Shown here: positions 32,040 to 63,410 of the stretch, one piece after another
How positions within the stretch are numbered: the first letter of the stretch is position 1
Layout of the letters: each line of letters begins with the position of its first letter
Source of the DNA: Oculina patagonica
Lineage: Eukaryota
Direction: 5' to 3'
NCBI RefSeq assembly: GCF_052425735.1
Contig: NC_135758.1
Coordinates: 45,508,001-45,572,000, forward strand
Length of the DNA: 64,000 bases
Position numbers and translations under genes: made by a program
The notes under the pieces: model-generated
Seen by the model: the letters and a program-made list of their open reading frames with translations, nothing else
Told to the model about the DNA's origin: nothing
Databases searched by the model: none

Positions 32040-35000
32040 TTAACACAAACCTGAAAAAACTCGGCCTCTCACTCGTTCTACAATCTTCTTGGCTATCCCT
32101 AAGGCCTCTTGCGCCATCTGGGCGGAGTACACGTCATGTGGGATATGAGGATAGCACATGCTGTCCGGATAGCGCATTCGTGCTGAATCACCAATTAGGC
32201 TTTCCAGTTGACCAGCCAAATCTGTTAAATCGGGATCACTCAAACTTAAAGAATTCTCGACCAGGTTGTGAATGTTCATCTTTTTGGCATCTACCATATA
32301 CTGCGCAGCCTTCAGAGCCTTCTCTGCTGCCTGTCAAGATATATTACAGGGATGTATTCATGCATGTGCCAAGAACTTTATACACCTTATTCATAACAAG
32401 CTATTATGTCATCCATATCCAACAGTATCGTACCTTATCCGTATCGTAAACGTCTTCTAAGTGAAACACAATGAGACCTATACCCATTGCTCGTCGACAT
32501 ATAAATTTTAGTTCATCAATGCAAGCCAGAAGTTTACTTCTTAAAATCGAGAATAAAAATGTTACCTGGTGGCATTTAAAACATGCCCACTCGTAAGAAG
32601 GTTTGTTGAACGCAATTTCGTCTGCACCAGCTACAAGGTCAGCTTCAGCTTGTCTAAACCAGCGCCTGGCCTCTCCTGGTTGGGAGTTCACCTTGCAGAA
32701 ACTTGGAGGAACATTGTGCCATGACTTCTGATCCGTTGTGCCTCCCCAAGACCCATACTGTTGGGAAAAGCGCATTCGGTATTCTTCACGCTGTGAGCCA
32801 TGTTCTCTGGCACGTGCTCCCCAGGAAACAAAGAAATCGTCGTAAACGCTCCCCAGTCTACAAATCTCACTCTGTATGTGCTGAAATACCTGTGTGCAAA
32901 ATTCTTCATTGCCCTTGTTCTTGTCAGGATGCCACCGTAGAAAGAGCCGCTTTACAATTTGCCTTCTTTGTACTTCTTCTTGCCTCCATGCATCCTCTAG
33001 CAGGTCGGAGATCTCACTAAAGACCACTTGTCTTGTCTCGTTTGTTGAGCGTTGTGTTTGCTGGTCAGATATTTCTTTAACTCGATGAAATTTGTACAAG
33101 TCGGCAGCAACCACAACTGGTTCTTTGTTATGCCCGATATTGATTCTGTACATCTTCGTTGGTAGATGTTCTGAATCTTCATTTATCATCTCCTCAATGA
33201 TAACAGCGTAGATGTACGTTGCAACTCCATCCTCCAGGTGCAGACTTGGGTCATCCAGCTGGTATCCTACATATTCTTCAGGTTCAAATTCTTCAAAGGC
33301 GTCATTCAGCAGATGATGGTCTTCGATTGGAATAAACGAACCTGGCTCCGGAAAGATATCCATTTCTACTGCTTTGTAGGTGTCATCTTGTCGAATTCCC
33401 ATATTATCCAACAAGGACCAAATCTTGCTGAGAGGACAACGCAACATCTCAGGAATTAACACCGCCTTCTTCCCAAGAAGCTCTCCATACATTTCTGCAA
33501 TCACGTTGGAAACCAAAGAAACGGCCGAAAAGGGTTCGTCCATTTCTGTTACGGCGTTGATGTAGACTCTCCACATCTCCTTGCCAGACACCAAAAGCCG
33601 CTGTTGGAAGAATGGTACTTCTGCTTCACTTCCTGGAATGAAGTTCCCATTGTAAAAAAGTGACGTTTTGAGATTTTTCACTGCACATAGATCGATGCTG
33701 CGAAGACTACACTCGATGTTTGCAATCACTTCTTCATCGAAATCTTCCTCCTGAGAGTTTACATCTCGAATCAGTCTTGCAATCCCACAACCAAACTGAC
33801 CGGAAGAAATCTGTTGTCTTAATATGTTGACTGTTCCATCCGTCACTGTCTCGGTATTCTCTGGATTACTGAGTTGTTCTTTCACCACAGAGGATAGCAT
33901 TCTTGGCTGTACACCTTCAGGTAATTTCATCATCAGCTCTTTATAGTTCATCATGGCAGACTTGCAACTGATATCCATCATGCTGAGTTCCAGCACACAT
34001 GGTTGGGTAAGTCCCCGGATACGACTTACGTATGCAGGTTGATCAACAAATATCAGATCAGCTGACTTCTGCAAAGTGACAGGGATTGTGTTTAGTGGCG
34101 AATTTGGAGAGCTGCCATGTCCTGGACACACCGCTGGCAGGTACAGCTTGGAAATAGTAGCTCCTTCTTCAGGATGCTCCTGCAATCTTTCAAAGAATCC
34201 TTTCACCGCTTTGCAGCAAAGGCTTACCTCGTTTGGGTGTAGTTTGACATTCAGGCAATTCTTGTGCAACATCGCCAAAACCATTGCATAATGAGCAGGT
34301 CTAACAGATCTGGAGCAGCCTAGGTACTCAAACAAAAGCTGAAACTTGCCAAATTCTGGAGGAACTCTGTAAAGATATGGCTTAATCTCCAGATCTTCAT
34401 AAAGCTCGAGGACCGCTTGCCTAGGCAAAACGAATTTCTTTCCTCCCTCAACCAAAATACAGCATGCTGTTTGAAGACGTTTCTTCAATACACTGTTTTT
34501 GATCGCATTTCGTTGTAGAAATGTGTAAATACGCTCCATGACCCCCATTATCGTGTGGCACTGTTCCGGTGAGACACTTTCTCTCTTGCTGTTGCTTTGA
34601 AGTTGAGAGCAAATAGTTATGCAGTGATCAACTACAACATCTACTGAAGGGTCCTCCACAATTTGAAGCTGGGCGACAAAACACTTACAGTGGTCGACAA
34701 TGTGGATATCGGGAGGGCAACCAAGCTTGTCACGATTACACGTTGGATCTGCCCACTTTGGAAGCAAAGGTGCTTTTGTCCAAACAACATCTTCATGATC
34801 AGAGCAAACTGATCCTTTATAGGCAATGAAGGGAGTTATACCATCTTTCTCTTTCACAAATGGAGGACAAATTTCTTGCAATGGTCGGCGAACAGGATCT
34901 GCGGCCACAAAGGGGATGCCACACACAATCTGTAGAAGACCTCCATTCAGGACATTTTTTCGAGAGAAAAGATGCTTGACAAGAACTTCAGACTTCTTGC

Positions 35001-38000
35001 GTGTATTCTCAGTTTGCGCCGTAGCAGCTTCATGTGCCACTTGTTTGGCAAATCTCTGAAAATGGTCAGAAGACACCGTGTGAACCAGGCCTATCTCTTT
35101 CAAAAACGATAGCCATTCGTCTGAGGCGAAAGACTCTGGTGGGAACTTGTCATCTGTTAAAAGCAATTTGAAAACATCGTTTCGAGGGTCGTAGAAACTG
35201 GACGCTGTCATTAACTTGCCGTCCTTTGTTGGAATGAATTCAACTGTCTTCAAGTGGTGCAACAGTCTCTCTTCATCAACATCTCTCTTTCTCTTTTCTC
35301 CACCAGTCAAAAACACCAATTGCCGAATATATCCAAGGTGAACCAGCCTTCCCTCTTGACTGAAATACTGAAAGCATTTCAAGACAAACTTACGATAGGC
35401 TTCCACACAAGATACCCGTTTAACCTCCAAGAACTCATAAAGGCCAGTCAGGCTTGGATGAGACTTTAAGAACAAACAACCCAGTCTGGATTCAACAACA
35501 TTTAGATCCAGTGTAGGAAATTCTTCAGGCAGGATGTAGCCCTTCCTACTCTCGAGTCGTGCAGTGCCACCACTTGCTGTTGTATAGAACGGTAATTGTC
35601 TCAAGGGTTCTCTGTGCACATCTGTGAGACTTTGTCGGTTGTCACTAAAGTACTCCAAAACTTTAAGGAAATCTGAGGACTTCAACTTGTCTTCAGGGGA
35701 GCGAAGATTCATCTCCAGCTTCTGGTCAAGTGCCATAAGGAGGAAGGTGGGCGATTTCAGAGTAGCTACGAGATTACGTACAAAATCGTACGAATCCTTT
35801 TGGAAGGGAGATGTTGTGCTTGTCAGTACATCTAAGTTGAGCTCCGGTAAGCCCAAACTTCTTAGAATCTCAATCAACTTTGGACTTGGTATACCGCTTT
35901 CAGCAAGGTCGACAACACACTTTGCTTTATCAAGGGGCACCAAGACATGCTCTAAGACTGTTTGCGTGTTGTCCAGAGTCTTCAAAGTACAAGAATTGTG
36001 TGGACCTCCCCCTTGGGTTGTCTTAGTCGCTGGTAGAAGGCACCATCCAGAAAGCGGCGAGAGAAGTTGAGTAATAACGGATTTTGACTCTTCACTTTCC
36101 TCTGGTCTCCTTACAGCATCTCTGCCAATCTCTTGTAAGAACCTCCATACCTTGTTTATCCAGCAGCGATTAGGTAAGATGGTGGGTGGGTTGTCTGGAC
36201 GCCATTCCACGAAAACATCTTCACCGTAAAAATTTGGAGGCAGGGTTTCATACAGGTAAGAAGCGAAAATTTCCACATCCAAAGGTCGGAAAACAGAAGC
36301 ATTTCCGCAATCCACATCTTCAAAAATGTTCTCATGAAGTTCATTGTGGACAAAAATGGACGGAGAATATGGCAAAATATCTGTATAGTGACTCAGACAT
36401 CGTGGTTTACTCGTACTAAATGTACGCAAGAAGTTGTCTTGGGTTAGAAGTAATGGAAGTCCTTCCAGATTCTCGACAAATCGTTCAGCATCTTTGCAAT
36501 ACTTAAGGACTCTAATCACTCGTTTGGAATTCTTGAATGGTGTCTTGTCAACAGAGCATGGAATCTGTCCGATGTTACAAAGTGAATCAGGATCGCTGAA
36601 GGACTTGTAGAAATCCATAACGGCAGAAGGCGCAATGCAGCAAACATCCACCCCGGCTTTCCTCAGCGAATTGAAGATGTCCACTGAAAATGCTACAAGG
36701 TTGAAGCCCGTTTCGATCAGGGTTTCTACAAACCTTGACTTTTCTTCATTTCTCCTGCTCTTGTTCTCCTGATCGTCATTACTTTCTGGTTCACCTCTTT
36801 GGCATGGAGCAGCGAAACAACCTTCCTTTTTTAGATTGCTGAAGTATGTTTTATCCTTGCCCGTTCCAGTCGGAGGGAACCATGTTACTTCAGCAGAGTC
36901 CCTCACGCCACAAGTAGAACTTTTCACGGATGGAATCAACCGCATTTCTTTGTTGCTCATTCCTTTGTAGACCGCTTCAACCAGTATCTTGCAATGGGGA
37001 TCTTTAGCAGAATACTTCGGAAAATATTCTTCATAGGCACGTAATCGTTTGAATATCGTACCTTTGCTGCAACTAGGACTACCAGGTGTTGTATAATCCT
37101 GCATCATTGGCAATTGGAGAAAACCACGCACTTCTTCCAAAAGTGTCAGGTAGCATAACGCAATGACATCACTTAACAAAGCGGTGTTCCAATCACTCTT
37201 ATAGCCGCCAGCTTCGTCTCTCCATAAACTTCGTCTTGCCTCATGGTCCAATGCAAAGTGTCCATTGATGTGAACTGGCAAATCTGTTTCAAAAGGAAGT
37301 GGAAGAAAACAGTATACTTTCTTTTTCCTGCTTGCTCGAGCTTGCTCGCCTTTTCCTGCTTGCTTGAGCTTGCTCGTCTTTTCCTTCTTGCTTGGGCTTT
37401 TGCTCTCTAGAAGGCAGGCAACACCTCCACGAGGTAGCAGCACTAACTGGTGCTCCTTAAAGGCATCCACAATACTATCTTCCACTGACGTCTCAAAGCC
37501 TACCCGTTGGACAACAAACCACTTTTCCTCCCTGCCACAGTTGTCTCTCAACGTCATGATATAGCTACACTTGGTGACATTGATGCTGGTGGGTAGGAAG
37601 TTGTCCTTCTCTTTAGCTTGAATTCCTAACTCTTTGATACAGTCAGCAAATGCTTGCCTTTTCTCATCGTCTTCGTGGGACATCAGCACTTCAACAGAGT
37701 AAGTATTGACTACGTTACCACTTGGTTCGTCGATCGTGCAAAGGCTTATTCTCTTCACGTTGTTCAGGAAGAGCAGAACCTCGAACAATTCCTTCTTCAG
37801 ATCTTCCATCATCACATTTAATTTCTTCACCGTTACTGGGGCTGATGATATGTTGGATACTTCTGCCATCTTCTCAGACCTTAAGGGAAACCTGAATATG
37901 GTTGCATTCCGCATTGGGAAATGATCCTCTAGATAACAAGGGAAGACATCTGGGAACTTTTGTTTCAGCATCTTGATGTCTCTGAACATTCTGCCCGGTT

Positions 38001-41000
38001 CTTTGTCACTTGCGTTCGGAACATATCTGCAGTTAGGGTCAAAAACGCACAAAACATCCCCAATTTCGTCACTCCTCGACCTAAACGATGGTACATCAGT
38101 CAGGTGGTAAACGGCATTGAAGCCAACGCCATACTGGCCAGTTGTGTTACTATCATCTCCCTTACTACCCTCGCCAAGGTTTTGCACACCTTTGATATCA
38201 GCTTCGGTGAATGGGCTATTGTTGTAAACACACAATGCAGGACCTTGAAGTGGCTTCCAGCTGTCTTCGAACACTTTTTCATCAGCATGGTGCCTGGGGT
38301 CTTGAATGAAGCAAATTTCAGTTGCTTCTGCGTCATCTGCATTTTGAAGAAGTTCTTTCAAAAGTTCTTTCTCGCATGGGTACGCTGTCAGAATCCGTTT
38401 AAGACGATTTGTCAGTTTCTCTCTTTGCCCAAAGGGAATCCCAACTTCGTGGTTTTGCAGGGCTTCTTGTCTTCGAGTTTTAACACCCAAACCGTCGCAC
38501 GTTGGCCAAGGAATTTTCTCATTGACAAAATGTACGCCTCTATCATCCGGCATCCATGGACAATCTTTCATACATAGCTCAGGCACTGGTCGCATCACGT
38601 CTCTAGAATCGGGAAGATAGACAGGTCCCCAATGACTTGAAGGATCACCACTTGATTTTTCCAATGTCTCCCCAAGTTGGATTGCCAAATTAACAGATAC
38701 TTCCTTTGTTTTCTTATCAAGTGGCATCTCCCGAAATTGTTTCTTTACTTGCTGAAGACTTGAAATGTAATCCTTCTCCTCAAACTGCTCTTTAACACCT
38801 GCATGTTTCATGACTTTCCAAAACGCATCAGCTAAGTCTTCTGGTAGCTTGTAAAGGTACGGGGAACAGTCCTTCTTCATTTCCAAAGCTACGCGATTTG
38901 CGGAGAGAAATCTTCTTCCGATGAGAATGAATCTTTTGTCAAGTAAAACTTCTTTGACCTGCTGATGGTTTCTGGCCATGGCTTTCTGAAAAAAGGAATA
39001 CGCCGCTAAGCAAATGCGCTTTACTTCATCATAACTGTTACGATTCAGGGAATCGATATTGGAAGCGATGGCGTCTTCGAGTTGCTTTAACACATGATTT
39101 ACAGTAACATCTTGTCTTTCAAACTTCAATAACTCTTTCACATTTTTGGACACGTCGAAGGCAACAAGCGGCTCGGTACAACACACTAAGTTCTTCTTTT
39201 CCTTCAGAAAAGCATCTTTAGGTGCCAGTAGAAACTTTCTTCTTCCTTGAAATTCGTCGCCTTTCCAGGTAAGAGGGAAGTTCTTTGGTCTCTGGAGAAC
39301 GGGCAGAAATTTAGCCTCTAGAAGACGTGCACAAATGGAATTTGAGGGGCCTTTATCATCGCTCTTCATTTTCGCTTCTATAAATGGAATTAACACCTCC
39401 ACACGCTTGACGGCTGCCTTACTGTCGACTTCGTTTACTCTTCCAATGCTTTCTGCTCTTTCTGCAATCTCTTTCCAAGGAAGACAATTGGACGCCATTC
39501 CCAACTGCTCAAGTTTGGCAAGTCGTTGAGGATTGCAAAAAGTATCATTGCTGCCAAAAGGAAACCTGCCATCGGCAGCACAAAATAGAGAGGAGGCTTC
39601 TCTGTTTGGGTTAACAAGTTGGCCTGGACACTTAAGAGTGCTTCCACTTGGTGATGCTGGAATGCAGGCATGCCGCATTATCAAATCATCGAAATCTGAC
39701 CTGCTGTTATCCAGGACATGTAGCACCAGTACATCTCTCAAGTCTGAACGAACTTGCAAAATGTTTGGAAAGAAAAGCTCACGGAAAAATCGACTCTTAT
39801 CATAGATCCGAGTCTTTATTACATCCCACAGACCACAAGCGATAAAAGACTGGAATACATCAGCTGGTAAGTCGATGACCACTTCGTTTTCTGCCGCCAA
39901 CTTCTTGAAAATAGCAAATGAAGCATCTCCTACTTGCGGCTCCATGCGGAATTTTGGATCAAGAAAAACTACTCGACCAATGTCAACCCACACACGTCCA
40001 TCTGAGAAAAGAGCATAATCTCCACTGGCTAGTTGTGTATAGAATGACGTCAAGATAGGGCTGCAGCCTCGATGTACTTTATCAACCTTTGGCCACAATG
40101 AATGGAACTTGTACGAGCCATCATCAGGAGCAAATGACTTCAAATCCTCGAGAAGACCAAAATATGCAGACACAATGGTATCTTGCATGAGAACATTGTT
40201 CCAGTCCGCTCCCTGACAGTTTTTGTCATCTGCAAGTTTTTCCTGCAAGCAGCGTCTGTTGGCAGCTACTGCGAAAGCTCCATTAATGTGCAAAGGTAGA
40301 CCACTATGGATTGGAAGCGGAAGGTAACAAAAGATAGTGCCACTGTGATTGGGTTCCTCTGGTTCTTCCACAACAGGTAAAGGCAAAAATTTGTTACTTC
40401 TGGTTGGCACCAGCTGAACAGCTACTCCTCCTGATGGAACGCAATTAACATCATTCCTTGCAAACTGCACCGCCTGTCCATTGCCCATTGAGGACACGAT
40501 GAGCCAGGTTACACGCTCTTGACCAAAACACTTGCCGACATCAAAGAAATTCACACCCACCCTGGTTAAAGTACAATGAATGTCGACTCTGATCGAGGTT
40601 TCGGGAGATTTACTTGGGTTGCCTTCTGGATATTTGTTTGGATCCCTTGAATCCCTTGTGAACTTGGATGATGCTTGAAGAAAGTTAAATTGCTTCAGGA
40701 AACTCTGCTGAGCTACATTCAATTTCTCTGCGGCAACGGGTAACGTGATGGGAAAAGACATCTCTCGAAGCGTTCCTCCTTGTGGAATAGATTTGCAGAC
40801 TTCAAACATTAATAATGGCTTTGGATCTTGAGTTGACAATTTTGACAGAGTGTAGATTCCAACGCGAAAAACATTCTGCGTGAACAGAAGCAACGAGTGC
40901 GCCTTGTGTAGAAGCATTTGTAAAAGTTCTCGCATCTCCTGATCATCATAACAAAGTTTCTTAATCTCACTTTTCATGGCTTGCTCTCTCGTTCTCAACG

Positions 41001-44000
41001 GAAATCGAAAAAGTGTCCCATCAAATGAGTTGTCGTCCTTGTCTAGATGCAAATCACAGCCAAAGATGCCATTGAATGGTTTGAACTGGTTTGAAAATTT
41101 CCGAAGGTTCTTTACATCTTTGTTGACGTCGATCTTCATTCCTGGCTTTCCCTTGTTTCTTACGGCCTTGCCAAGGTACGACATGTGAGGATCCAAGATC
41201 ACAAAATAGTTCTGACTTAACAACATGGGTACATCTGTCAGATTGTACACTGAATTAAAGCCAAGTCCAAACCTGCCAATCTTTTCAGTGTTGTGCACTT
41301 TGGTTGCTTCGTTCAGCTTTGTGATGTTCACAAAGTCTTCATCTTTAAATACGGCATCGTTGTAGACCCACAACGCAGGACCTTGGCAATGTCTCATGCC
41401 TTCGTTAAACAAACAGGTCAAAGCATCCTCGTTGGTTCTTTCATCATATAGGAATCTAACTTCAGTGCCACCGGCATCATCTGCATTTTGAATGAGCTCT
41501 TTGAGTACAGCAAATCCATCTGTATACTCCTCCAGAAGCTGGCTAAGTCGAGTGGTAAGTTTTTCTTCTTGCCCAAACTCTTCTCCTATGGACAGCTCAT
41601 CGGCATCCAGCATTCGATTAGTGAGGGTTGGAACACCCAAACGTTCAGCAACAATATTGGGAACAATGGGGTGGACATAAAAATAGTCGACATCTTCATC
41701 GTCTCCTCTCTTCAGCCATTCACGTTCACAGTACATACAGTGTTCAACTGGTTCGAGCTTTACATGTGAGTTGCCTTCAATATGAATAGGAAGAAGAATC
41801 TTTGCTTGAAGCTCGGTCGACAATTCCTTACTAACCATCACATTCAGGATGTTGACAGTTAACTGGAGGTCGTGCTCCACCTCTGATGCACTGAACTGGA
41901 CACTTCTGTTGTCGTGCTTCTCTTTGATCATGCCAAGGACTTGCACAAGAACAGCTGGATCACTTTCTTCTCTCATACCAAAATGGTGGAACAGATCTGA
42001 ATGTTTCATCATTTCAGATGGAAGAGAGCATATGTAGGGTGTGAGATCAATGAGTGGCTTGCTGGAAAGCACATGGTTAGGTGAGGAAAAGCCATCTCCA
42101 TTCCATATCCAGTCAGTCACCTCGATAGAGGCAAATGCTTGAGCCACAGCAGCGTACTTTGCATGGTTCAGAAACGAGTAAATTTCATCTACCATGACCA
42201 TGTAAAACGGTTTCTCTTCTTTGGAGTAACATCTGGTCACAGTTTTGAACTGCTTTACAACGTCAACAACATCTGGTTGATTTTGCCATCCAAAATACTT
42301 GGAAACTTCATTTGATGGCTCTACCTCTACGACAGGCATGACTGATCCAATCAGATTAACCAACTGGTGGCTCTTCACTTCATCTGGCCTGAAAAAGTAC
42401 CTCTCTTCTGTGTCTCCTGTTTCCCACCAAGGAAGAGATTGGGGGTAGTTAGGAGGCACCTTTTGCAATCTTGGCACCCATTGACAGCTGTTTAGTAATC
42501 GTCCAAGTGGTTGCCCATTGATTGGTTCCTGCAGTTTTTGGGGATTGTCATCAAGATACTGTAAAATTGCTTTCGACTTCTGTACTGCAGTTGAATGTCG
42601 AGTGAGCATGGTAACTACCTTGGCACTTTGGTACAGACCGTTTCCAGTGATGTTGTGCTCACTTTTCATTCCGAGTTCTTCCAACACGACGAGGACAGCA
42701 GGGGTGGTGTAGAGTGCACCAGCTGGAAAGATATTTTGGCCCACAAATATTTTCCTCAGAATGTCACTTCTTGGGTCAAAGACGTCCAACGGCCTCACAC
42801 GACCTCTATGCTTGGAGACAAATGACAAGGCTTGCAAACTCTGCTTGAAAGTAGGATTTCTATGAACGTCACTTGCAAAGCGCTCCAGCACATAGGCCAT
42901 CAACTGATCAATCTGCTTTTCAGAATATTTTCCTTGTTTGATATCTGGAAACACCATTTGGCAGAGCAATTCAGTGGGCGTTAGACTTTTGACCTCTAAG
43001 AAACGTGCCAAAGATTTGGAATCATCCTGGGACGCATCAATAAGTTCATGTCGTGGAGCTACTGGAAGAGGCTCGTCAGGCGCTGCATACAGACCATCTC
43101 CTGCTGACACAAACTTCTTTGACAACGTCTCAAAAACCGGAAGGGAATGCAAAAGATAAAACTCCTCATTCCGTAGGGACGATGGGCGGACATTGGCAAG
43201 GAAAGATCTCAAAAGCTGCTTCCCTTCTGGCGACACTTCTCTTTGTAGGATTTCCACAAGTTTTCCAACTGCTACCTTGGACGAGGAGACCACCATTGCT
43301 TTCAAAACACCTTGTACGGACGGTGGATTAACAACTGAGCCCAGCACAGCAGGGTGTTGGCTGATAAAAGTGGGAAATTCACTCATGATGATCAGGCCAA
43401 GCTTCCTTAAGACATTCGTCAATGCGTCACTGAGACAATCATCATTAAGACATTTCACAACTACTCTGGAGGGATAGCAAAGTCTTGCCAAGGCTATAGG
43501 TGTTTGCGACATGCTGAGTGGAATCAGGGGTAGTTTACAAAGGGTCACAATGCTCTCTTTCGAAACAAAGTGTTTCTGTAGATATCTCCACAGGTCCTTT
43601 ATCCACTCCCTCGGAGGATGGTTGCGGTTACTGTCATCAGGGTACCACAGAACAGTGTCATATCTCTTCCAGTTGGACGGGAGTCCATACCAGAGAAAGG
43701 CGGCCACGACTTCTTCATTAAGGAATCGTAATTGTGTGCGCCCTACGGTATCAAATAAGAAATGGTAATGTTTAGAAAAAGATGCGAAAACCTATAATTG
43801 ACGTTTCCTACGAAAGCCTTTCGCCAATTTTCCCAAACAAACACCTGAGGCTTGAAACGCCTTCTTTCCTATTTCACCTCAGTGATTAATTCACTTTTTG
43901 GAATACCATTAACAACGTATTAGTCGTTTGGTCTTCAAGGGAAAATCTTAAACTTCGGCCTTTCTGTATTTTCCTTTGCTATCTCGCTCAGTCAATACAG

Positions 44001-53000: not shown

Positions 53001-56000
53001 CGACCAATTGTTCAGAAATGAAAATCGACACAGTTCTTGCTAAATAAAAAAAAAGTTTTACGGCGGAGTCAGGCTCAAAAAATATACCGCAAGATCACAC
53101 CCCCATTCATAGTCAGAAACCAGCAAACCATCTAGTTTGCTAAAAAAAACACTGCGTGACATCAATGACGTTACCTTTTTCATTTACAAAAATAACTTTA
53201 ACTTGTCAAAGTAAGTGCAATTTCACAATGGTGAATATCAGTACAGTATGGGGCCCAGTTCTCGGCCACTTTGTGTTTAACGCGTTTTTCACACTCCAGT
53301 TGAATCAAAAGAAAAAGGTATTTCCTTCAAACGATAGACTGATTCATGTGCTTTAAGTATCTTGAGTTTGATCGTTCAATTCGATATAGAAAGCTCACAC
53401 GTCGAGTTTACGCGGAGGTAGGTGAATTTGCATTCCCGAAAAAGTTGTTTGTTTACGGCTCCAAATTCATGGATGTAGTTAAATTCGTATTTTATCCAAA
53501 AGCCCCCACCATACGAGCTAATTTTTGGCATGTGAAACGTAGAATAATTCAGCTTTCTGCTTTAGTTAACTTTTCGTTGAACCGTTGTATTTTTTGGTCT
53601 TAATTTACTTCGAAATTTTTTCTTGCGACGTTTGCGTATTTGCCAGTTCTCGGCCACCCTGCTCGCTATCACAGCTTAGCGCTTGGTTTTTAATATAATT
53701 TCATCTGCTGCTGCCAGAATGAAAGAAATAAATGTTTTAAAAATAAAGTTCAATCTTATCTCTAAGTTTTGAGCTGACTCTTGTCTTGTCTATTATTTCT
53801 ACAACACCTAAATCTTTCAAGACCTTTTCACTGCAAAATAAACCATCTAAATGCACGGGTCACACAATGCGGTTTTGCCAGAGCCTGCACATAGGCAACT
53901 AGGCGCGTTAAAATCCTTCTTTTCTAAAGTAAAACAAAGCATCATAAAAATAATTTGGGATCGATATAGTATAAATAGGTTTACAGAGTGATTTTATGAC
54001 TGTGAAAATTAATTGAGCATTTTTTTACAGATAATTACGCACAAGCTTTTTAGTGGCCGAGAACTGGGCCAAGGTGGCCGAGAACTGGGCCCACAAATGG
54101 AGCTTTTATTTTTATTATTGCTCGGGCAAATTAATTTTTGACCGGTCGAAAGCTTTACACCAAAAAGCTGAATAATGTAGCTAGCTCTGGGAGAAATTTC
54201 AAGTTCCTGCGGTTCTTCTGAGGTAAGAAATACAAGTTTACGTCAAAAGTGGCCGAGAACTGGGCCAAGGTGGCCGAGAACTGGGCCCACAAATGGAGCT
54301 TTTATTTTTATTATTGCTCGGGCAAATTAATTTTTGACCGGTCGATAGCTTTACACCAAAAAGCTGAATAATGTAGCTAGCTCTGGGAGAAATTTCAAGT
54401 TCCTGCGGTTCTTCTGAGGTAAGAAATACAAGTTTACGTCAAAAGTGGCCGAGAACTGGGCCCCATACTGTACTTTGCCCCGTAAGCTTTTTTCTCTGTC
54501 CTTCCGCCGAAGCAAAAAAACACAACCTGATTACACATTAACCCAAAAGTCGACCAAGTGTGCCTGCAACGATTTCCTGTCAAAACTAAAATGAAAACCA
54601 TTGCGGTATGCGTCACCCGTAGCGGTTTTGTAGCAACCCCAAGCTATCCCCGTCTTTTTGGCCGCGCCAGGAGACTACGCTCTAGGACGACTAAAGGGTA
54701 AACTATAAATCGGCCACGCCCGATTAATAATTTCATTGTGTTCCTTGAATAAGAGAAAAGGCTAAAGTATTGCCTTTTTCCTTGTTTTTACCTTTGTTTG
54801 TTTGTTTGTTTTCATTTGTAAGTAAGCATGTACATTCCAGCATCCACTAATGGACACTTCCTGCAGGCAGACACAGTTCCCATAAGTGGACAGTCAGTCA
54901 TTGTCTTAGCCACAAACAGTAGGTTATGGATTTTACAGTACTGAACGAGATGTAATATATTAAACATGACGGGCAATATTTCAGACACATCTTCTCGATT
55001 GAAACCAATGATTAGCGGTATTATTCCCTTTGTTCTTAATTGATGAATTATTAGACAAGTTTGAGATGGTTGTTTGCAAAACAACTGAGCAGAGCAAAGT
55101 TCTTGAGAAAAAGAGGGGCATAACTACAAAAGAGGCAGGAGTACTGAAGAGGCATGATGGCCTAATGGTTAGTGTGCTGGACACTGGATCAAGCAGACTG
55201 GGTTTTTGCCCTGGCCAGGGTCAGCATTTTACTCTTGCCCTGGCCAGGGTCAGTGTTTTACTCTTGAGCAAGACACTTTACTCTCACTGCATTTCTCCAG
55301 CCAGGTGAATAAAAGGGTACTGGCGACTTTCAAGCTGGGGGTTAACCCCAGCATCAAATAAAGAATGTAAAAGGGAGGGCTAATACAGGGGGTAATTAAG
55401 GGGGTGGGGATAAAGAAGAGGTAACAGAGCAGGGTATCATAGAGGGGGTTGTTAAAAAAAAGAGGGGTAACAGAGAAGGGGTAATAAAGAGGGAGTAATA
55501 GAGAGCGGGTAATTGAGAGAGTGTGACAGAGAGGGGTAATAAAGAGGGGGTAATTAAGAGGGTGGTAATAAAAAAGAGGTAATAGAGCAGGGCGTAATGC
55601 AGGGGGTGGTAAAAACAGGGTTATAATAAATAAGGGGGATTATTGAGAGGGGGTAATAGAGAGGGAGTAGTGGGGCTTAGGAGAAAAATTGAGCTTTATT
55701 GAGCTTACACATACATGTATCAGTATATTTAGCATCTTGGGATTGAAGATAAGAAAAAGATCAAGCCCATTGGCCCATTAGGTCAAAGCCTATCCCTGTC
55801 TCTATTCCCCACCGGATTGGATGCTAGTCCATCCAAGGGTTACCCCCAGCATTAAATTTGTCAGTACCCATTTACACCTTTGCAGAGAAAGGCACTGCTA
55901 GAGTAAAATGTATTGTCCAAGAACACAATGCAGTGCTCCGGCCAGTCTGGGCTCGAACTTGGACCACTCAATCCAGAATAGAGTATAACTAACCATTAGG

Positions 56001-59000
56001 CAACCCCATAACCCTGGGGGCACTCAAAAAAGTGTTATACGGGGAGGCTCCGCCTGAGGTCCAACTCCTTACCCCTTTATATACCATTTTGACAGAAAAA
56101 GCACCCCTTTTATATACCTTTTTTAGAAAAAAGGTACCTCTTTCATATACCTACACGACACGACATATACCAGTACTTAAAACAGGACGTTTTCTTGGCA
56201 TTTTTATGTAGCACTTAATAAATTAAGACGATACAGCCATAAGTTACGTCTATTCGAAATATATGATTTAAACGCCTTTTTAAATATCTCAATGACAGAA
56301 TTTCCTACAATTTCATATACCTTAACTTGTGAAATCACTACCTTTTAATATACCAGAAGCCTGAAAAAGGTACCCCTTTAGGGCAGAGCCTCCCCGTATA
56401 GGCCATTATAGGGAATAGCCCACCCCCCTTGGGCCCATTACTAGACATATAAAGTAAACCTATAATCAAATTCTCCCAAACTAAGTGAAACAATAGAGAG
56501 ATATGGGATAATTGACATTGCAGTGTATCTGCGTGTGTACCTGAAACTGAGCAAGCTCATCATCATAAAGATGTGCTGTTCCATAGGTGTGTTTGTCATA
56601 AAGAAACTTGTTGTCACTGGCACCTGCATCCTCAGCATTTTGAATAAGTTCCTGAAAAAACCCATTGAGATATTTTCAGTTTTACTCCCAGCAGTGTCAG
56701 CTAAAAAGAATTGAGCATGGATGTTAAAAAAATCTGAATTAAAAAGCTGACATGATAGCATGCATGCATTAACATATTCACCGATCTCTGACATTTACAC
56801 TAATGACCCATTTTTGGACTGACATGTCCTGATAAAACACAGACACAGCTTGACTGATATACCACCAACACTTATCCATTTTACCACCAATATGTGACTG
56901 GTGGCACATCAGTTGATATTCAATCAATACTCTGTCAAAAATGGACTGACATATTGGTCAACTTGATTATCAACTGATGGTCTATTGAGTAATACACTAG
57001 GAAAGGTTAACTCTATCTTTAAGCCTATTGGGCTATTACTGCCTTACCACGCTAGTGCTATACTCAAGTTTCATTGTAATAGACTTCAAAGTTGCATTGC
57101 ACCGTTCCCCCCCCCAGCATTAAATTTTGGTACCAATTATACTATCCATATCAAATTAAAACTGTGGAATTGGTATGGGATATTATGGCCCAAATCTGGC
57201 CGATAGATGGGAAAAATAATTATGGGATGTCTGAACTATGATACTGAAATGACAAAGTTTCCATACCATTCATATATTTAAATCTTCCATATATATCAAT
57301 ACCACAATTCCATATCATTTCCACGTATGGGAATTTTATGGAATTTTATCAAATACAATTAAGAGCAGCAATTCAATGCAACATATGGGTATATTTAACA
57401 ATTATTCGCCAAAGGCGAGGTGAATCACGGCGAATATTTGTTAAGAGATTCACTGAGCCTGAGGCGAATAATTGTTTTAGTCTAATTTTCAGAGGTAAAT
57501 ATCAAGAACTATAAAATAAAGAACTAAAACACAGAACCAACAAACACAAGTCTTCGCTTGAATACTTGTAAACAAGTTTAATTCATCGATTGTAAATCGG
57601 AAATATTTACAGTTAAGTTTAAGCAATAAAACGAAACAAAACAAAACACTACAAAAAAGACAGATATCTAGTACCTTTGTTTAATCGTTGGCGGCTTCTG
57701 AGCAATTGTGTAAATCCTCTTGAAATAAGTCGAGTAGCTCTGATGTGAAGAGAACTGAGTAATTTTTGGTCAATTGATCTGCCACTGAGTTTCTTGTGGC
57801 CGCCATGTGATCTCCAAAACCACCGTCCTTAGCACAAATTCTAATTCCTTGAGAACCATCTCTTGAAAATATTTTTGGTTCAAAAGCCTTGGTAGCCAAT
57901 TTTAAAAATTCCAACTGTTTTGAATACCCCGGACTTGACGTGATTTCTTTCGAATGAACAAAAGTTTCATTCATCAAATGCCGCCATGTTTACTTGCCTG
58001 GATGGCAAAGTTGGCGTGGCTTAGTAACCAAGCCCTCAACTGCTTTATTCACCTCTAAGCGAGGTGGATATAATGTCATTAAAACCAGAGCTTCTTGACC
58101 AATCAGAATGTCACATTCTTATATTCACCTCTTGAAATTAGACTAATATGGAATATCATATGCTGTATCAAAGCCATATGAAATCCATATATTGGCCATA
58201 GATGAACCCATACCAAATCCATACATGGGCCATATATGTCCCATACCAAGGGCTGTAAGGGCTGGATGAAGAGGCATAGTGAGCTAGAGTAACAATTGTA
58301 TTACCCCAGACACAGCACACAGACTCCAGCCAGGGCTTTAACTCTGACCCCTCAATTAAGGTTTCCAGCAACATAATCATTAGGCCTAGGTAACGTCAAC
58401 CTCAACCAATATATGGGTGGATTCTTGACCGCAATTTCTCCCCCAACTTAAACCCAACAGCTAAAACTTGATCACTGGATGTGCATGCTATATTTAAAAA
58501 TTCAAAATGAAAGGAAAATAACCTCCAAAATTATGGTAGAATTTAATTTAAGGGCCCCATGAAATTGATCCATGCACTTAACAGTATCAGTACACAGGAA
58601 TGCAATAAAAATCCAAGAAACAGAAATTAAATGTGCCATTACATAACTAAGTACAGCAACAACTATAACTGATCTTTAATATCAGTTAAATAATCAGGGA
58701 ATTAATTTGCAAACAAATTGTAAATATTTCCTTACCTTTAGTATCTGTCCATCATCTGGATACTGATCTAAGATCTTTTTTAGATGCTGGATGAGCGACG
58801 GCTCAATCAAATCAAACCCATCATCATCATTTTCTGCTAAAGGACAAAAAGAAATATTTATATAAAAAGCTTTAAATTCCTTTTGAAAAATGTCTAGTGG
58901 AGATATTTGTAAATTGCATTTCCAAACTTTTAAGAGGTGAGAAAAGATTTGAACTGTGTTATGAAAGGTGTACCAATTTTTCTATAAAAAGGGCTGTTTA

Positions 59001-60531
59001 GTACGCACCCACCCCCCTACCACCCAAGACTGTGTCCAGGAAGGCATACACCCTAAGGGTTGCAAAATATGTTAAAGTAGGCATCAGTAACTGAAAGAAC
59101 AGAGAGCTGTGGCAATTACCCTGGGGGGGGGACTCCTATATGAAACGGACGGGGATACTCGTCGGAAATTTTGAAAAGAACCCCTAAAATAGACCAATCT
59201 GGGTGTGGCTCAAGCTTTTCTTGACCCCTAAAAGATACCAAAAAACTAAGAATATAATTTATATTTGTATATTTCTTCGTGTGTAACCTTAAACAAGACC
59301 ATTATGGCTAAAAATATTGGTGTTTTTCCCGGGACACCCTAAGCGAGACCAAAAATCCAAAATTTACACCCCTAAGCGAGATGACGAGCATCCCCCCCTC
59401 CCCCCGGGGCGGCAATTAATGTTCTAAAATAAGGTAATTTATTTTATAAAGTAATTTTATCTAGAGTAACCAGTGACATACTGATACACCTAATTGAAGA
59501 AACTTTGACCATGTGAAATGCATAAACCATGAACGATGCAGCCAAATAAGATTCTGGGTAGACAGCATTGGTAAGCTTAATAAAATTCATTTTATTAATA
59601 ATTAAGATATTTTCTTTCTTTGTGAACCTCAAGAGTATGATTCAAGAAACCTGTCTTATTCTGTCACAGATGACGATAACATTTTTCCGATTATCCAGTA
59701 AACTTTTGGGTCGCATTGTTCATGGATTATGTCTCTCATGGCTCACTGATTCTTCAATCCGGTGTATAATCAAGTAGCGGAACTCTGACCGCCTCCGGCT
59801 TATTTTTGATAACCTTGTAAACCCCAGACACAGATTGACAGTATTAAGCCTAACTACAAATGCATTACACAACCACATAAGCATCTACTTCCAAAAGCAC
59901 TAAAGTTACAGGACTCAAGCAATCAACATTGATGCTGGTGTGAGGAAAAGTGACTAAGAGAGTGATTTCAGCTGGTACCCAGCCCCTTCAATTATAGAAG
60001 CGGATAATTACCCCGGGGGGGGGCACTCCCATACATGAGCTATATAGGTATGTGCCGCTGTGAAGGGTATGGTTTTCAAGCAGTTTAGTCTGGGATAGGG
60101 TATAGAAATCAGAGAGTTTTGGTCTAGAAAAGGGTAGCATTTGCCGGGAAACCGATCGACGGTGACAAATATAGTCCAGAAACTCGGAAGAGAAAGAGGC
60201 TTTCCTAAACGTAAATAAAATCATCGCGGCAGCGTTGTTCACAGATGGTTTTCCATTAAAACACTGATAATGATACAGTTCTAACAAAATGCAAGTCTGT
60301 GATAGGGTAGGGATTTTCAGTGCCTAGTCTAGTATAGGGTTGCAAAAATCAGCTGAACATGGTCTGGTATAGGGTAAGGGCTTCAAATTCCCAGCGGCAC
60401 ACCCCCACCCAAAAATATACCGGGTGCCCCCCCCGGGATAATTACATAAAAATCTATAATAAAATAATATATAATCTGCATAAAAAATATAAAAAATAAA
60501 AGAAGATCTATAATTTATAATACATACCCAT
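32040..60531 (-). CDS. SACS: Sacsin-like protein (~4470 aa); coding exons 60531-60528, 58836-58736, 56651-56541, 49463-49316, 46912-45907, 45386-44812, 43742-32566, 32330-32040
   Basis: All junctions GT-AG and phase-compatible (13413 nt = 4471 codons). Three sacsin repeats with GHKL/Hsp90-like motifs ([11 protein letters not shown]...GRFGLGF; [11 protein letters not shown]...GRFGLGF; [11 protein letters not shown]...GQYGVGF), J-domain RWHPDKN, and C-terminal HEPN (ARRWFRQA...FKCHQ|AAEKALKA...HNL...RYPD). The ATG exon is the least certain part; orthologue versus paralogue status is unresolved. Confidence 0.92.
32566..43742 (-). CDS. Giant 11,177-nt exon of the sacsin-like gene
   Basis: Uninterrupted ORF (track 32404-43707); acceptor tag|GG at 43742, donor CAG|gtaac at 32566. 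Confidence 0.95.
44500..44668 (-). mobile_element. tRNA-derived SINE, degenerate
   Basis: Reverse strand reads ...tggcccaatggttagcgtg...ggttcgaga...ttgagcaatacactt; same family as the 55.1- and 55.8-kb copies. Confidence 0.65.
47203..48988. mobile_element. Foldback non-autonomous DNA transposon (Kolobok-like; TTAA TSD; ~790-bp inverted arms)
   Basis: TTAA|GGTGGCTC...GAGCCACC|TTAA; left arm 47203-~47993 is the reverse complement of ~48196-48988, so the ORF track shows mirror-image ORFs on both strands. Confidence 0.9.
50729..51662. mobile_element. TIR element with subterminal 15-bp minisatellite and an internal ~120-bp duplication
   Basis: gactggactggactagtaaaacgcggact... / ...agtccgcgttttactagtccagtccagtc; (gttttacaagtccgc)n at ~51410-51655; direct repeat ~50852-50970 / ~50994-51120. 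Confidence 0.75.
53244..54470. mobile_element. Tc1/mariner-pogo-like non-autonomous element (TA TSD) with a 196-bp internal tandem duplication
   Basis: ta|cagtatggggcccagttctcggccacttt ... aaagtggccgagaactgggccccatactg|ta; near-identical units 54052-54247 and 54248-54443. Confidence 0.88.
55149..55350 (+). mobile_element. tRNA-derived SINE
   Basis: A box tggcctaatggttag, then cttgagcaagacactttactctcac...gggtactggc. Confidence 0.75.
55370..55675 (+). repeat. Purine/G-rich minisatellite
   Basis: Repeated agaggggtaat-like units. Confidence 0.8.
55770..56002 (-). mobile_element. tRNA-derived SINE, inverted relative to the 55149 copy
   Basis: Reverse strand gcctaatggttag...gttcgagccc...gttcttggacaatacatttt...aaatgggtactg...ggactagcatcc. 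Confidence 0.75.
56013..56433. mobile_element. MITE with CC(T)GGGG-type termini and 8-bp TSD
   Basis: TSD cccataac / cccattac; subterminal inverted tatacggggaggctc / gagcctccccgtata. Confidence 0.75.
57390..58146. repeat. Interspersed repeat with internal aggtgaat/attcacct inverted motifs (possibly Crypton-like), apparently nested in a catat-rich repeat
   Basis: aacaattattcgcc...aggcgaataattgtt hairpin at the left end and attcacctc motifs at the right end. Classification uncertain. Confidence 0.4.
59119..59410. mobile_element. MITE with CCCTGGGG/CCCGGGG termini and perfect 8-bp TSD
   Basis: ggcaatta at 59111-59118 and 59411-59418. Confidence 0.85.
60012..60437. mobile_element. MITE with CCCGGGGGGG termini and perfect 8-bp TSD
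   Basis: ataattac at 60004-60011 and 60438-60445; second family member at 2113-2560. Confidence 0.88.
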
Positions 60532-61007
60532 GTGCAGTTAGGGATCTTATTATCCCAGGAAAGTCATCTGAAATTTAAGAAATCACATACGACAATTAGG
60601 TCAACATATGAATCATTGAGAGAAACACAAAACAAGACCACAACTGGGTCCACCCTTGGCCAGTTAAAAATGCTTAAATCACTTGAAGACCTTGTCAAAC
60701 AAATGCTGAGACTTTGTCAGCCCTTTCCTGTACCCTTTTTTTGTCGGCATGCATTTTGGGGGGTGTCCGGATTACAACCTTATTCCCAGGGTCCTGTCCT
60801 TCTATGCACTGGGATCAGCAACTGGTGCAGTGTAATTTTAAAAATACATTGCATGTGGCACTGACTCCAAGTTCTCATTTCCCTGGGGTATTAAATTTTG
60901 TGAAAGAGAATACTTCTTTGCAACTTGTATTATCGGCCAACGGAGTTTGCTTTCTTGCTTTAAAAACAGAGATTTCAGGCAAGGGGAGAGTGTTGAAAAA
61001 CCACTTA

Positions 61008-61822
61008 CCGTAAAGTTCCGTGTATAAGCCGCACCTTTTTTCTCTAAATTCAAGTCAAAAATCGGGGGTGCGGCTTATCTACGGAAACATCTCTGGTTGG
61101 AGTTCTCAAAGGCCTATTAATATTCATAAAAAACTTCTAAGACGTCATTGAATAAACATATAAATGATATAACAACCTGAAAACTTTGTTGTTGTTCACT
61201 ACCTTTTAGTTTCTCTGCAAAGCTGTTTGCAGTGAAGCTTGCCAGTCACTTGGAATCATGTCTTACCGCCGCGTGCGAGAAGGCACCAAGATAAACGCAA
61301 ATACTCACAAGGCAAATTGCTGACCGCTTCGGTTTTTTATTGACCTTCACAGCAAATACATCTGCTGGATTAACAAACTCTTATTCTGCATGAAGTTTTA
61401 ATCCTGTTGTGGGTAGCAGTTTCCAAGAATCTTGAAATAAAAACGTGGTTTCTTCCGAAGAAAATGCCGCCATGTTTGTTTTTAATGCCCAGACTCCTCT
61501 CTACAATATTCAGAGCTTGGCTACTAAGCATTCATCATTCGCGTACGATTCGAACGAATTACAAGTGTTTCAGGAGTGTTTAGAAGTGATAATCTCGAAA
61601 AAATGCTATCAAGAGAGACTTAATTTATATTAAACATTGCAACAACCACCGTGTCAGTGTCTCGAAACTGTACTTGTTTGCCCTTGATTGTTTACCAATA
61701 GAACTTCACTTGAAGACTTGAACTTCAAACTTTATGGTCTGTATTTTTTTTTTCAAAATTTGAGCTTCCAAATCGGGGGTGCGGCTTATCTACGGGTGCG
61801 GCTTATACACGGAACTTTACGG
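61008..61822. mobile_element. Pogo/Tigger-like non-autonomous element (TA TSD)
   Basis: ta|ccgtaaagttccgtgtataagccgcacc ... ggtgcggcttatacacggaactttacgg|ta; subterminal gggtgcggcttat repeats. Confidence 0.88.
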
Positions 61823-62116
61823 TATTAGATTCAAATTAGAAAAAATTCACATAACCATAACATCCAAAAAAATCTAACGATCACAGTTAGCTTATTCGAA
61901 GATAATCTAAAGTGTATTTTCCAAATATAAGTGAACAGAATTTGAAATCAATGAAGCAGACAGCTCTTCATTCAAGGCGGTGTAAACAAGACAGCATTTG
62001 ACCTTAGTACTACTAGCTTATACCCACGCCAGTACCGAATCTCGTTTATGAACTGTGACTGTTAAATGTAACACAAACTTTGTTAAACAGCAAAAAACAA
62101 CAACAGGATATCTTAA

Positions 62117-62787
62117 GGTGGCTCAACTGGATTTTCAAGGGGTAACACCGCTCAAGTTTGAGAATAAACTACGTCGCCATTAACAGTGCTATCGAAAAAC
62201 GATCACCACAGTTGTATTAGATAAAGATGAAATTTTTTCATGACCAGTGTTTTATTGGCATCGGAGTTGCCATAGCAACGAAATGACGTCATTACGTTTT
62301 TTACGTTCGCTCGTATTCCTCGGCACCAGGAGATTTTTTCGAAAATCGCTCAAAGGAGCTTGTACCACATATGGCTGCCTCGATGTTGGCAAAGTTTGAA
62401 CAAATTCTATAAGAGCGTTTTCGAAATATTTGGGGATGAAGTTTTCAGGGCTATAAATACAGTCAAAAACATACTAACGAGAAAATGGGGTAATATCTAA
62501 AGAAAACGAAGCGCTTGTGAATTGCAATTTCATCTTATAGTAGTTTGATTCCATTTAAAATCGTGGGAAAACAGTGGTGGGGATTGCTTTGGTCGATTGC
62601 GAGAAAAAAGAATTTGATGAGCGTGCGTTCCAGTGCTCTTGTTGAACAATAAAACACTGGTCATGAAAAAATTTCATCTTTATCTAATACAACTGTGGTG
62701 ATCGTTTTTCGATAGCACTGTTAATGGCGACGTAGTTAATTCGCAAACTTGAGCGGTGTTGCCCCTTGAAAATCCAGTTGAGCCACC
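62117..62787. mobile_element. Kolobok-like MITE (TTAA TSD, ~140-bp TIR), relative of the 47.2-kb foldback
   Basis: TTAA|GGTGGCTCaactgg...ccagttGAGCCACC|TTAA; internal catagcaac, atgacgtca, gagcgttttcga and gatgaagttttcagg are shared with the 47203 arm. Confidence 0.88.
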
Positions 62788-63279
62788 TTAAAATAAATGT
62801 GGGACTCCTGTAAGATTAAATTTAAATTCCTGAGATTAAGTAAGTCAAATGGCACTCTTCACATGTTGACAGCTACTTCTATTTACGTTAACTTTTTTTT
62901 GCAAAAATATTAGAGGAGGGGCGCTTGTTAAACCTCATCGCTTCTGCATGCATTGCGTGCCCTTTATTTAACGGGTTCAACACCAGTTACCCCGGGCCAG
63001 TTACCCGCATGCTTCCGCACATTTTAACGATCATAGCCCAACATTTTGTTTTTGTAATACAGGTAATATGAAGAGAAATGAATAGGTTCGCTGTTTAAGT
63101 CATCTCCTATGCCTACAACAGTCCAAACCCATGACAGCGACTTAACAAGACTCGTAATTAATCCAGAAGCTCTGTCAGACCGAACTCACTCGTTCGGCCG
63201 CCAGCAAAATTTGCGAAAAAGCAAACTAACATAACAGACAAGCACAACGCTAACATAATCAAACTGTCGTAAATTTTAC

Positions 63280-63410
63280 CTTTTCTTCTTTCACTCTTCA
63301 GAGTCGCAGAAAGACACAGTAGCTGAACGTTTTTTCCTTGCTAGTCTTGTTCCACGTGCTGACCTTTCGCACAACAACTGGCGTGAATGAAATTCCGGAA
63401 AATCCCAGGC
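63280..63410 (-). promoter_or_regulatory. Putative promoter and non-coding first exon of the sacsin-like gene, with NF-kB-like sites
   Basis: Minus strand GGGATTTTCC (63406-63397) immediately followed by GGAATTTC; CACGTG ~45 nt further; donor AAG|gtaaaa at 63280; CpG-richer than surroundings. No transcript evidence. Confidence 0.45.

Follow-up and report, generated by a model that had tools for sequence, protein, structure and literature searches.

The 64,000-nt window analysed here (Oculina patagonica, contig NC_135758.1, positions 45,508,001 to 45,572,000) very probably contains an intact and transcribed sacsin-like gene of about 32 kb, which encodes a protein of 4474 aa with an architecture usual outside vertebrates and which has a plausibly Rel-responsive element in its promoter. 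The gene and its architecture add little by themselves because both are already known, being annotated in RefSeq and covered by the literature. The new point is the conservation in related corals, as judged from aligned promoters, of the NF-kB-type motif. The conserved promoter element, the micro-exon carrying an upstream open reading frame (uORF) and the split ATG are not described in the coral sacsin literature that we examined.

Gene structure and transcript evidence

The gene lies on the minus strand, as do all the features given below by their positions in the window, and all of its introns have GT-AG ends. As stated in the preliminary description, eight exons are spliced into a single open reading frame of about 4470 aa; the exact length (4470-4474 aa) is set by which 3' end is used. 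Ten exons were found in total, i.e. a non-coding first exon, a 40-nt micro-exon, seven more coding exons (one of them giant, with 11.2 kb) and a terminal exon derived from RefSeq. The 3' end of the first exon (63280-63349) is exact and its 5' limit is a minimum extent deduced from contig depth; its donor, AAAAGG/GT, is kept in four species. Micro-exon A (60528-60567), with transcript joints on both sides, is conserved in six loci. Exon B (58736-58836) encodes residues 2-35, the start of sacsin repeat 1, and is placed by the joint from 60528 to 58836 and by a contig from run X1. The ATP-binding motif of repeat 1 is encoded by exon C (56541-56651), where a match to PF25794 is located, and the remainder of the repeat-1 ATPase domain by exon E (45907-46912). 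Exon D (49316-49463) includes the internal Met at which the RefSeq model starts, and exon F (44812-45386) precedes the giant exon G (32566-43742; 11,177 nt, 3,725 codons). The repeat-1 solenoid, repeats 2 and 3 and the J domain are all encoded by exon G. The HEPN domain has its first third there and the remainder in exon H (32051-32330).

Two 3' ends can be proposed. Read-through past exon H to a TAA at about 32040 gives a protein of 4470 aa ending in FSGLC, and the RefSeq splice from 32051 to 31304 gives, with the corrected N-terminus, a protein of 4474 aa ending in FSGATTSEK. The coding start of this last exon (31282-31304, ending in ATTSEK) is that of the RefSeq model. In exon H, the ancestral stop of the orthologues is TCA in O. 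patagonica. The RefSeq entry "sacsin-like [Oculina patagonica]" corresponds to the same gene with a start placed 82 residues too late; the corrected start, a useful result, restores these 82 residues, among them the ATP-binding motif of repeat 1.

The read-derived contigs cover positions 57700-63600 only, at a low depth (about 4x). The "RNA" label of the runs is a guess, and the RNA origin of the contigs rests on splicing itself. A contig from run X6 shows the spliced joints 63280 to 60567 and 60528 to 58836, with GT..AG ends that match the predicted 5' exons exactly, and a contig from run X1 shows exon B flanked by non-intronic sequence. Because of these joints, the exons at 63280 and 60528, for which the preliminary description had called for confirmation, are both real. 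A promoter near 63.3-63.4 kb is supported.

The start ATG (60531-60529) is split by an intron from the second codon, micro-exon A ending with the first base of codon 2, and is preceded by an in-frame TAA (60540-60538). The N-terminus of the protein and the stop upstream of the ATG are exactly those initially reported. Since an in-frame TAA stands ahead of the split ATG in a micro-exon confirmed by transcript contigs, and since the protein from residue 2 onwards corresponds to repeat 1, the reported absence of a ubiquitin-like (UBL) domain is also correct, and a UBL exon is ruled out for this transcript. Micro-exon A encodes in addition a 5-codon uORF (60567-60550); in the six loci, the ATG of the uORF is found at the first base of the micro-exon and ATGG/GTATGT at its end. 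The N-terminus MA..DD.F.LIQPSLIQQL is common to the paralogues and to the Acropora and Montipora proteins. This conserved 5' architecture, in which a non-coding exon is followed by a micro-exon bearing both the uORF and the split ATG, is also useful.

Domain architecture of the protein

The protein matches the SACS family of Pfam (PF25794, E=1.4e-204) over three stretches. Each of the three sacsin repeats possesses a Bergerat-type ATP-binding motif (E..QNA.DA, GxGF) and is a predicted ATPase, motif I of GHKL/Bergerat ATPases (ExxxNxxD) as well as the glycine-rich motif being present in 3/3 repeats. The ATPase domain of repeat 2 (40828-41565) matches PF25794 with 282 bits and the Hsp90-like domain of human sacsin (5V44) with E=1e-47, and that of repeat 3 (37708-38424) matches PF25794 with 261 bits. 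The J domain (32851-33030), with its HPD (LRWHPDKN), aligns with that of mouse sacsin (1IUR, E=6.6e-15), WHPDKN included, and its match to the Pfam DnaJ model is below the cut-off. The HEPN domain (32067-32670), split by an intron (32565-32331), was detected with PF05168 (E=8e-13; 49 bits vs. a cut-off of 22) and with the HEPN domain of human sacsin (3O10, E=3e-15). The features of the sacsin family are thus all found: Hsp90-like repeats, a J domain with HPD after them and, at the C-terminus, a HEPN domain. Between residues 3300 and 4150 of the protein (P0001), no match to a PDB sacsin XPCB domain was obtained at E<=1, which is a weak negative from a sequence search only.

This HEPN domain does not contain the Rx4-6H motif of RNases. 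It reads RMRYPD (KTRYPD in human), with no His 4-6 residues after either Arg, and the position of its own His is occupied by Q, R or K and N in other members of the coral family, so that no His is conserved there. The role of RNase effector that had been attributed to this domain is therefore not indicated, Rx4-6H being absent as in human sacsin. The protein would rather act as an ATP-driven, Hsp90-like clamp recruiting Hsp70 via its J domain, and the C-terminal HEPN domain would dimerise and bind nucleotide or RNA, not cleave it.

Orthologues and paralogues

The census of the family in the O. patagonica genome gave a single copy on contig C1 (the present gene), a tandem cluster of seven genes on contig C7 and two copies on contig C13. 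The gene shares 71-81% identity with its orthologues vs. about 57% with the C7 paralogues of the same genome. In the tree, its clade includes genes of Acropora and Montipora, and the C7 paralogues stand apart; for the Acropora muricata protein P0028, a near-identical ENA protein (P0045) was used as a stand-in. The gene is a member of an old scleractinian subfamily, and its presentation as a lineage-specific paralogue does not hold, given this grouping with Acropora and Montipora orthologues at 71-81% identity. Nor is the absence of UBL a special feature, this domain being a vertebrate addition to sacsin (PMC3710099). UBL-less sacsins have already been described in corals and fish (PMC8626496; bioRxiv 10.64898/2026.09.30.754977), and three repeats followed by J and HEPN domains, without UBL, are the ordinary architecture of non-vertebrate sacsins.

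A conserved kB-type element in the promoter

A decamer with the kB consensus, GGGATTTTCC, is located in the proximal promoter (63397-63406), about 115-117 nt upstream of the first-exon donor. Taken alone, as a motif in a single sequence, it is at chance level: the window contains 9 occurrences of GGGRNWYYCC vs. 4.1 +/- 2.5 expected, and 5 out of 100 shuffles reach 9. The strict kB consensus is found in 4/4 close species, i.e. in O. patagonica and in its three closest orthologous promoters (L005, L013 and L014), which carry GGGATTTCCC at the aligned position. Moreover, the decamer lies within the most conserved 14-mer of the four-species alignment (13/14 positions invariant vs. a background of 31%). 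It forms part of a conserved composite core-promoter element, CTGGGATTTYCCGG(AATTTCATTCA), which in the four closest species begins with ten bases matching the NF-kB consensus. At the more distant locus L026, the kB consensus is interrupted by a 1-nt insertion (GGGTATTTTCCC), with the remainder of the element intact. The Acropora-type locus retains only an 11-mer, GGGAAAATTCC, and the donor downstream of it is unverified.

The decamer is abutted by a second kB-like site, GGAATTTCAT (63387-63396), which is kept in L005 and L026 only, GGCC... being found instead in L013 and L014. Of the tandem kB sites initially proposed, the location of the decamer, the abutment and the conservation in the three closest orthologues stand, and the second site is missing in two of these three. 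Two further motifs are shared by these promoters: an upstream block, GATTATCCCCACCC (63444-63457), with 11/14 positions invariant in four species, and an E-box, CACGTG (63353-63358), located inside or near the first exon and present in 4/5 aligned orthologous promoters.

The decamer is probably a real cis-element. Relative to the transcription start site, it may be located either at about -10 to -50 or within the 5' UTR. A promoter shared among paralogues was rejected: neither the promoter nor the micro-exon has a similar counterpart in the C7 and C13 paralogues, whose exon B has no kB site nearby. A transposon origin was also rejected, the exact 18-mer being unique in the genome. A form with one mismatch, GGGATTTACCGGAATTTC, belongs to a repeat dispersed in about 45 copies; beyond the motif (about 26 nt), this repeat and the promoter do not align, and the A of the mismatched form is at odds with the kB consensus.

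Regulation and function

Rel-homology genes are present in the O. patagonica genome, that of NF-kB on contig C4 at about 57.03 Mb and that of a second protein with a Rel-homology domain on C7 at about 20.84 Mb, and cnidarian NF-kB binds kB-type sites (PMC5700166). Together with the conserved uORF, the element would make expression regulated and, plausibly, responsive to stress or immune stimuli via a Rel-homology factor. We tentatively suggest that the conserved GGGATTTYCC site and the uORF micro-exon may mark the subfamily as a direct target of such a factor (NF-kB or NFAT-like), a suggestion that may well not hold. A stress or immune role of coral sacsins has already been proposed in the literature, in which these genes are described as heat- or immune-responsive and as diversified in corals (PMC6208414, PMC8626496, bioRxiv 10.1101/867754). 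The main text of Weiss et al. 2013, cited by PMC8626496 for an effect of poly(I:C) on a sacsin-like gene, does not contain the word sacsin.

It is quite possible, if short of probable, that the gene encodes a constitutive co-chaperone of proteostasis and that the factor bound by the conserved promoter block is a general one (ETS/GABP-, E2F- or STAT-type), the fit to kB being incidental, as the chance level of the single kB match would allow. The bases invariant in 5/5 aligned species, TTYCC(C)GG, resemble an ETS/E2F core, and TTCCGGAA is palindromic. However, the four closest species also share an invariant 5' GGG in the decamer, which neither an ETS nor an E2F core requires. A GAS/STAT match, TTCCCGGAA, was detected in L005 and L026; as these are only 2/6 loci, the STAT/GAS reading was rejected. 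At the protein level, the J domain with HPD and the Hsp90-like repeats, as in human sacsin, argue for a co-chaperone, whereas the stress response repeatedly reported for coral sacsins (PMC6208414) does not fit with constitutive expression.

The preliminary description had proposed a lineage-specific, NF-kB-responsive ATPase/HEPN paralogue acting in innate defence or stress; read as an NF-kB-induced effector of innate immunity, it would have its HEPN RNase driven by GHKL ATPases. The kB decamer conserved in four species, within the most conserved promoter block, is consistent with this proposal, as are the relationship between the sacsin ATPase and the antiphage protein Tiamat (bioRxiv 10.64898/2026.09.30.754977), the virus response reported for fish sacsin-like genes (PMC8913943) and the long-term balancing selection on an Acropora sacsin (bioRxiv 10.1101/867754). 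Nevertheless, such an effector is unlikely here: the gene is not lineage-specific according to the tree, its HEPN domain is devoid of Rx4-6H with no His conserved there across the coral family, the more distant loci have a disrupted kB consensus, and the paralogues lack the element. As for the block TTCCGGAATTTC being an HSF1 site that drives heat induction, this is most improbable although heat induction is reported for coral sacsins (bioRxiv 10.1101/867754) and nGGAnnTTCnnGAAn is a possible reading of the O. patagonica sequence, and it was rejected because the register is not conserved, the spacing in L005 and L026 being TTCccgGAA, with a 3-nt gap, and the GAA unit being absent in L013 and L014.

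Should a Rel-homology factor directly target the subfamily, a Tiamat-related ATPase would for the first time be tied to the innate-immune signalling of cnidarians at the cis-regulatory level, and this would support an ancestral role of sacsin in defence or stress, later exapted in vertebrate neurons. A promoter element that is short, conserved, uniquely placed and fitting the NF-kB consensus is useful as well. The genetics of bleaching and heat tolerance has pointed to coral sacsins repeatedly, and a link of sacsin to antiphage ATPases has recently been reported; the 25-nt element therefore provides a cheap and concrete test of immune or stress wiring.

Comparison with known systems

The O. 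patagonica protein shares with vertebrate sacsin (SACS, the ARSACS protein) the three repeats with Hsp90-like ATPase, the J domain with HPD, the C-terminal HEPN domain and its non-canonical motif, (K/R)xRYPD...IPxD; in both cases, one giant exon encodes most of the protein. In contrast to vertebrate sacsin, it has no N-terminal UBL and no detectable XPCB, which lies between repeat 3 and J in the vertebrate type. The O. patagonica gene also differs by the intron splitting HEPN, by seven small 5' exons and by the split start codon, and it is one of about 10 paralogues in its genome, whereas vertebrate sacsin is a single gene.

Among the "sacsin-like" genes of corals (e.g. that of Acropora millepora, which is under balancing selection), the combination of Hsp90-like, J and HEPN domains without UBL is the same (PMC8626496), and the tree places the O. 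patagonica member in a clade with an Acropora muricata sacsin-like protein. The O. patagonica member is distinguished by its location on contig C1 and by a RefSeq model short of the first 82 residues. Bacterial Tiamat proteins are different, with a PD-(D/E)xK nuclease in place of J and HEPN (bioRxiv 10.64898/2026.09.30.754977). The same study describes the Tiamat-like type XI-A, i.e. SACSIN homologues without UBL and XPCB, in which three ATPase domains are followed by J and then by HEPN. The O. patagonica protein presents this very arrangement; type XI-A was described from aquatic chordates, whereas the present gene is that of a cnidarian.

Results

The window (C1:45508001-45572000 of the 529-Mb coral genome G000) contains on its minus strand an open frame of 3767 codons at 32404-43707, which matches Pfam SACS (E=6e-160) and shows 100% identity to P0001, the 4392-aa NCBI protein "sacsin-like [Oculina patagonica]". 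P0001 was mapped back onto the window and the splice sites were read. On the minus strand, the resulting chain comprises a non-coding first exon (3' end 63280) and exons A (micro-exon, 60567-60528), B (58836-58736), C (56651-56541), D (49463-49316), E (46912-45907), F (45386-44812), G (43742-32566) and H (32330-32051), followed by a terminal exon starting at 31304 in the RefSeq model. Every intron is GT-AG. The ATG at 60531-60529 gives a product of 4474 aa, whose first 45 residues are exactly those of the preliminary description. Two C-terminal versions are candidates, a read-through form of 4470 aa (...FSGLC*), i.e. the ORF of about 4470 aa proposed initially, and the RefSeq-spliced form of 4474 aa (...FSGATTSEK*). 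P0001 begins at Met83, within exon D, so that the ATP-binding motif of repeat 1 is missing from it. Since paralogues and orthologues from Oculina, Acropora, Montipora and Porites share the same upstream start, the longer N-terminus is, from these sequence comparisons, the norm for the family.

Then, we checked four runs for transcripts of the region 57700-63600, where contig depth is low (about 4x). A single contig of sequencing run X6 skips 58836->60528 and 60567->63280, both skips ending CT..AC on the plus strand, i.e. GT..AG on the minus strand. The two predicted exons ending at 60528 and 63280, for which an RNA check had been suggested, thus have their junctions precisely in this contig. 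In the first exon it covers about 70 nt and ends near 63349, as estimated from depth in a bin, which does not map the TSS. From run X1, a contig of 251 nt has exon B as its middle 100 nt, with flanks that do not continue into the introns. In addition, an in-frame TAA (60540-60538) precedes the ATG in the transcript-confirmed exon A; an upstream UBL exon therefore cannot be in frame in the X6 transcript, and the claimed absence of a UBL holds.

Exon A opens with an ATG at its first base, giving a uORF of 2-6 codons (60550-60567 in the window), and ends ATGG|GTATGT, so that an intron splits the main start from codon 2. Both features were found in 6/6 loci (the window and orthologous loci L005, L013, L014, L025 and L027), Acropora type included. 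At the other end of the gene, orthologues L004, L011, L012 and L024 have a stop (TGA or TAA) 1 nt ahead of the conserved GT donor after exon H (ACT TGA G|GT). The O. patagonica sequence has TCA at this position (32049-32056); its ORF is therefore 4-8 codons longer, either running through to a TAA or continuing across the former 3'-UTR intron.

The introns also carry repeats. Between exons D and E, a large inverted repeat (47199-48992) has arms of about 810 nt (47199-48006 and 48184-48992), 94-97% complementary around a centre of 177 nt, and resembles a foldback-type element or the product of a recent inverted duplication. Tandem arrays lie at 51429-51653 (15-nt unit, 15 copies), 54052-54462 (196-nt unit, 2.1 copies, 99% identity) and 55464-55669 (14-nt unit, 14 copies).

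We then examined the protein. Three SACS ATPase stretches were identified; repeat 2 matches the Hsp90-like domain of human sacsin (5V44, E=1e-47), the J domain is similar to that of mouse sacsin (1IUR, E=7e-15), HPD included, and the HEPN domain to that of human sacsin (3O10, E=3e-15; PF05168, 49 bits). Exon chain and domain matches together confirm the UBL-less architecture of repeats, J and HEPN first noticed. A sequence search of residues 3300-4150 of P0001 for XPCB gave no match at E<=1. The motif region of the HEPN domain has no Rx4-6H. In the motif, MRYP alone is shared by all ten coral family members compared, D being nearly invariant, and the two His of the window protein become Q/R/K and N in the others. 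Human sacsin likewise reads KTRYPD...IPND at this place and is without the motif, and in the HEPN-T family the catalytic H is often replaced by D (Anantharaman et al., PMC3710099). The sequence thus gives no indication of the suggested RNase role.

A PF25794 search of the genome found one gene on C1 (the window gene), seven on contig C7 (11.75-12.15 Mb) and two on contig C13. The repeat-2 units of 28 proteins were placed in a tree rooted at midpoint only. There, the window gene groups with P0002 (support 99), then with P0003-5 (support 100), within a 20-row clade including Acropora muricata and Montipora foliosa proteins. The second main clade contains Porites and Montipora capricornis proteins together with three O. 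patagonica C7 proteins. Identity is 71-81% to the relatives in other corals vs. about 57% to paralogues of the same genome. Because the former are closer, the gene is, on this sequence evidence, a member of an old subfamily and not the lineage-specific duplicate initially supposed. One of the C7 paralogue regions, C7:12064345-12084364, has a normal set of 5' exons and a 3721-aa frame, and between them shorter frames of 1462 and 1499 aa with extra SACS ATPase matches; either a single gene with over three repeats or a copy that is broken or duplicated may account for this.

Finally, we looked at the promoter, where two adjoining kB-like sites had been proposed. Taken alone, the kB decamer motif (63397-63406, minus strand) does not stand out (9 occurrences in the window vs. 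4.1 +/- 2.5 expected), and orthologous promoters were therefore fetched. The three closest orthologues (L005, L013, L014) have GGGATTTCCC, a strict kB consensus, at the aligned position. The second site (GGAATTTCA, 63387-63396) is kept in L005 and L026 only. In the four-species alignment, with 31% of columns invariant, the best 14-mer is CTGGGATTTTCCGG (13/14 invariant), which includes a 9-nt stretch that is the longest without a change. Also conserved is the donor of the first exon, AAAAGG|GT, about 105-125 nt downstream of the block. In the more distant L026, the block reads GGGTATTTTCCCGGAATTTCATTCA, a 1-nt insertion breaking the consensus and the 3' part being nearly identical. An Acropora-type locus has the 11-mer GGAATTTTCCC, or GGGAAAATTCC as its reverse complement; it precedes the candidate donor AAAAGGTAAG of a putative exon by about 140 nt. 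With such conservation, the element very likely has a function. The leading single candidate for binding it would be a Rel-family factor, with a probability approaching an even chance. Rel-homology proteins are encoded in the genome, and cnidarian NF-kB binds kB-type sites (PMC5700166). The element can also be read as an ETS/E2F-like core, TTYCC(C)GG, in 5/5 aligned loci and as a GAS-like TTCCCGGAA in two. An HSE reading was rejected, its register not being conserved among loci.

The exact promoter 18-mer occurs at one place in the genome, and a near-copy with a consensus-breaking A, GGCTGGGATTTACCGGAATTTCTTTACCGG, lies within a dispersed repeat. This repeat family, with about 45 sites (e.g. 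C1:46969782, C2:3940338), resembles the element over about 26 nt and does not align with the rest of the promoter. The paralogues share neither this promoter nor the micro-exon. Elsewhere in the window, a GC-rich block at 20360-25889 (48-51% GC, strong negative GC skew) holds 5 of the 9 kB-pattern matches. Two further matches (59127 and 60020) fall in the intronic stretches 59079-59472 and 59867-60457. Each of the three contig runs shows summed depths in the thousands over these stretches, which belong to element families that are highly repeated and transcribed. On the upstream side of the kB site, at a distance of 65 nt, is a near-perfect palindrome of 65 nt (63471-63535), its 32-nt arms separated by 1 nt. 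C3 and C5 carry similar copies. Since it aligns poorly in the closest orthologue, the palindrome may have come into the O. patagonica promoter as a small MITE-like insertion.

Discussion

The window gene itself is already known, and our additions are modest: a corrected N-terminus, a conserved uORF/split-ATG micro-exon and a short conserved promoter element, the last of which makes the question of regulation directly testable. NF-kB responsiveness and immune function would be candidate roles only. The proposal of an inducible immune or stress effector restates a published idea for an annotated gene, since the literature already holds it. The UBL is a vertebrate-specific fusion (PMC3710099); SACSIN homologues without UBL and XPCB have been described as Tiamat-like type XI-A, their antiviral function being raised as a question (2026 preprint, bioRxiv 10.64898/2026.09.30.754977). 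Fish sacsin homologues were reported in antiviral responses (PMC8913943), and Acropora sacsin is under long-term balancing selection and was reported to be heat-induced (bioRxiv 10.1101/867754).
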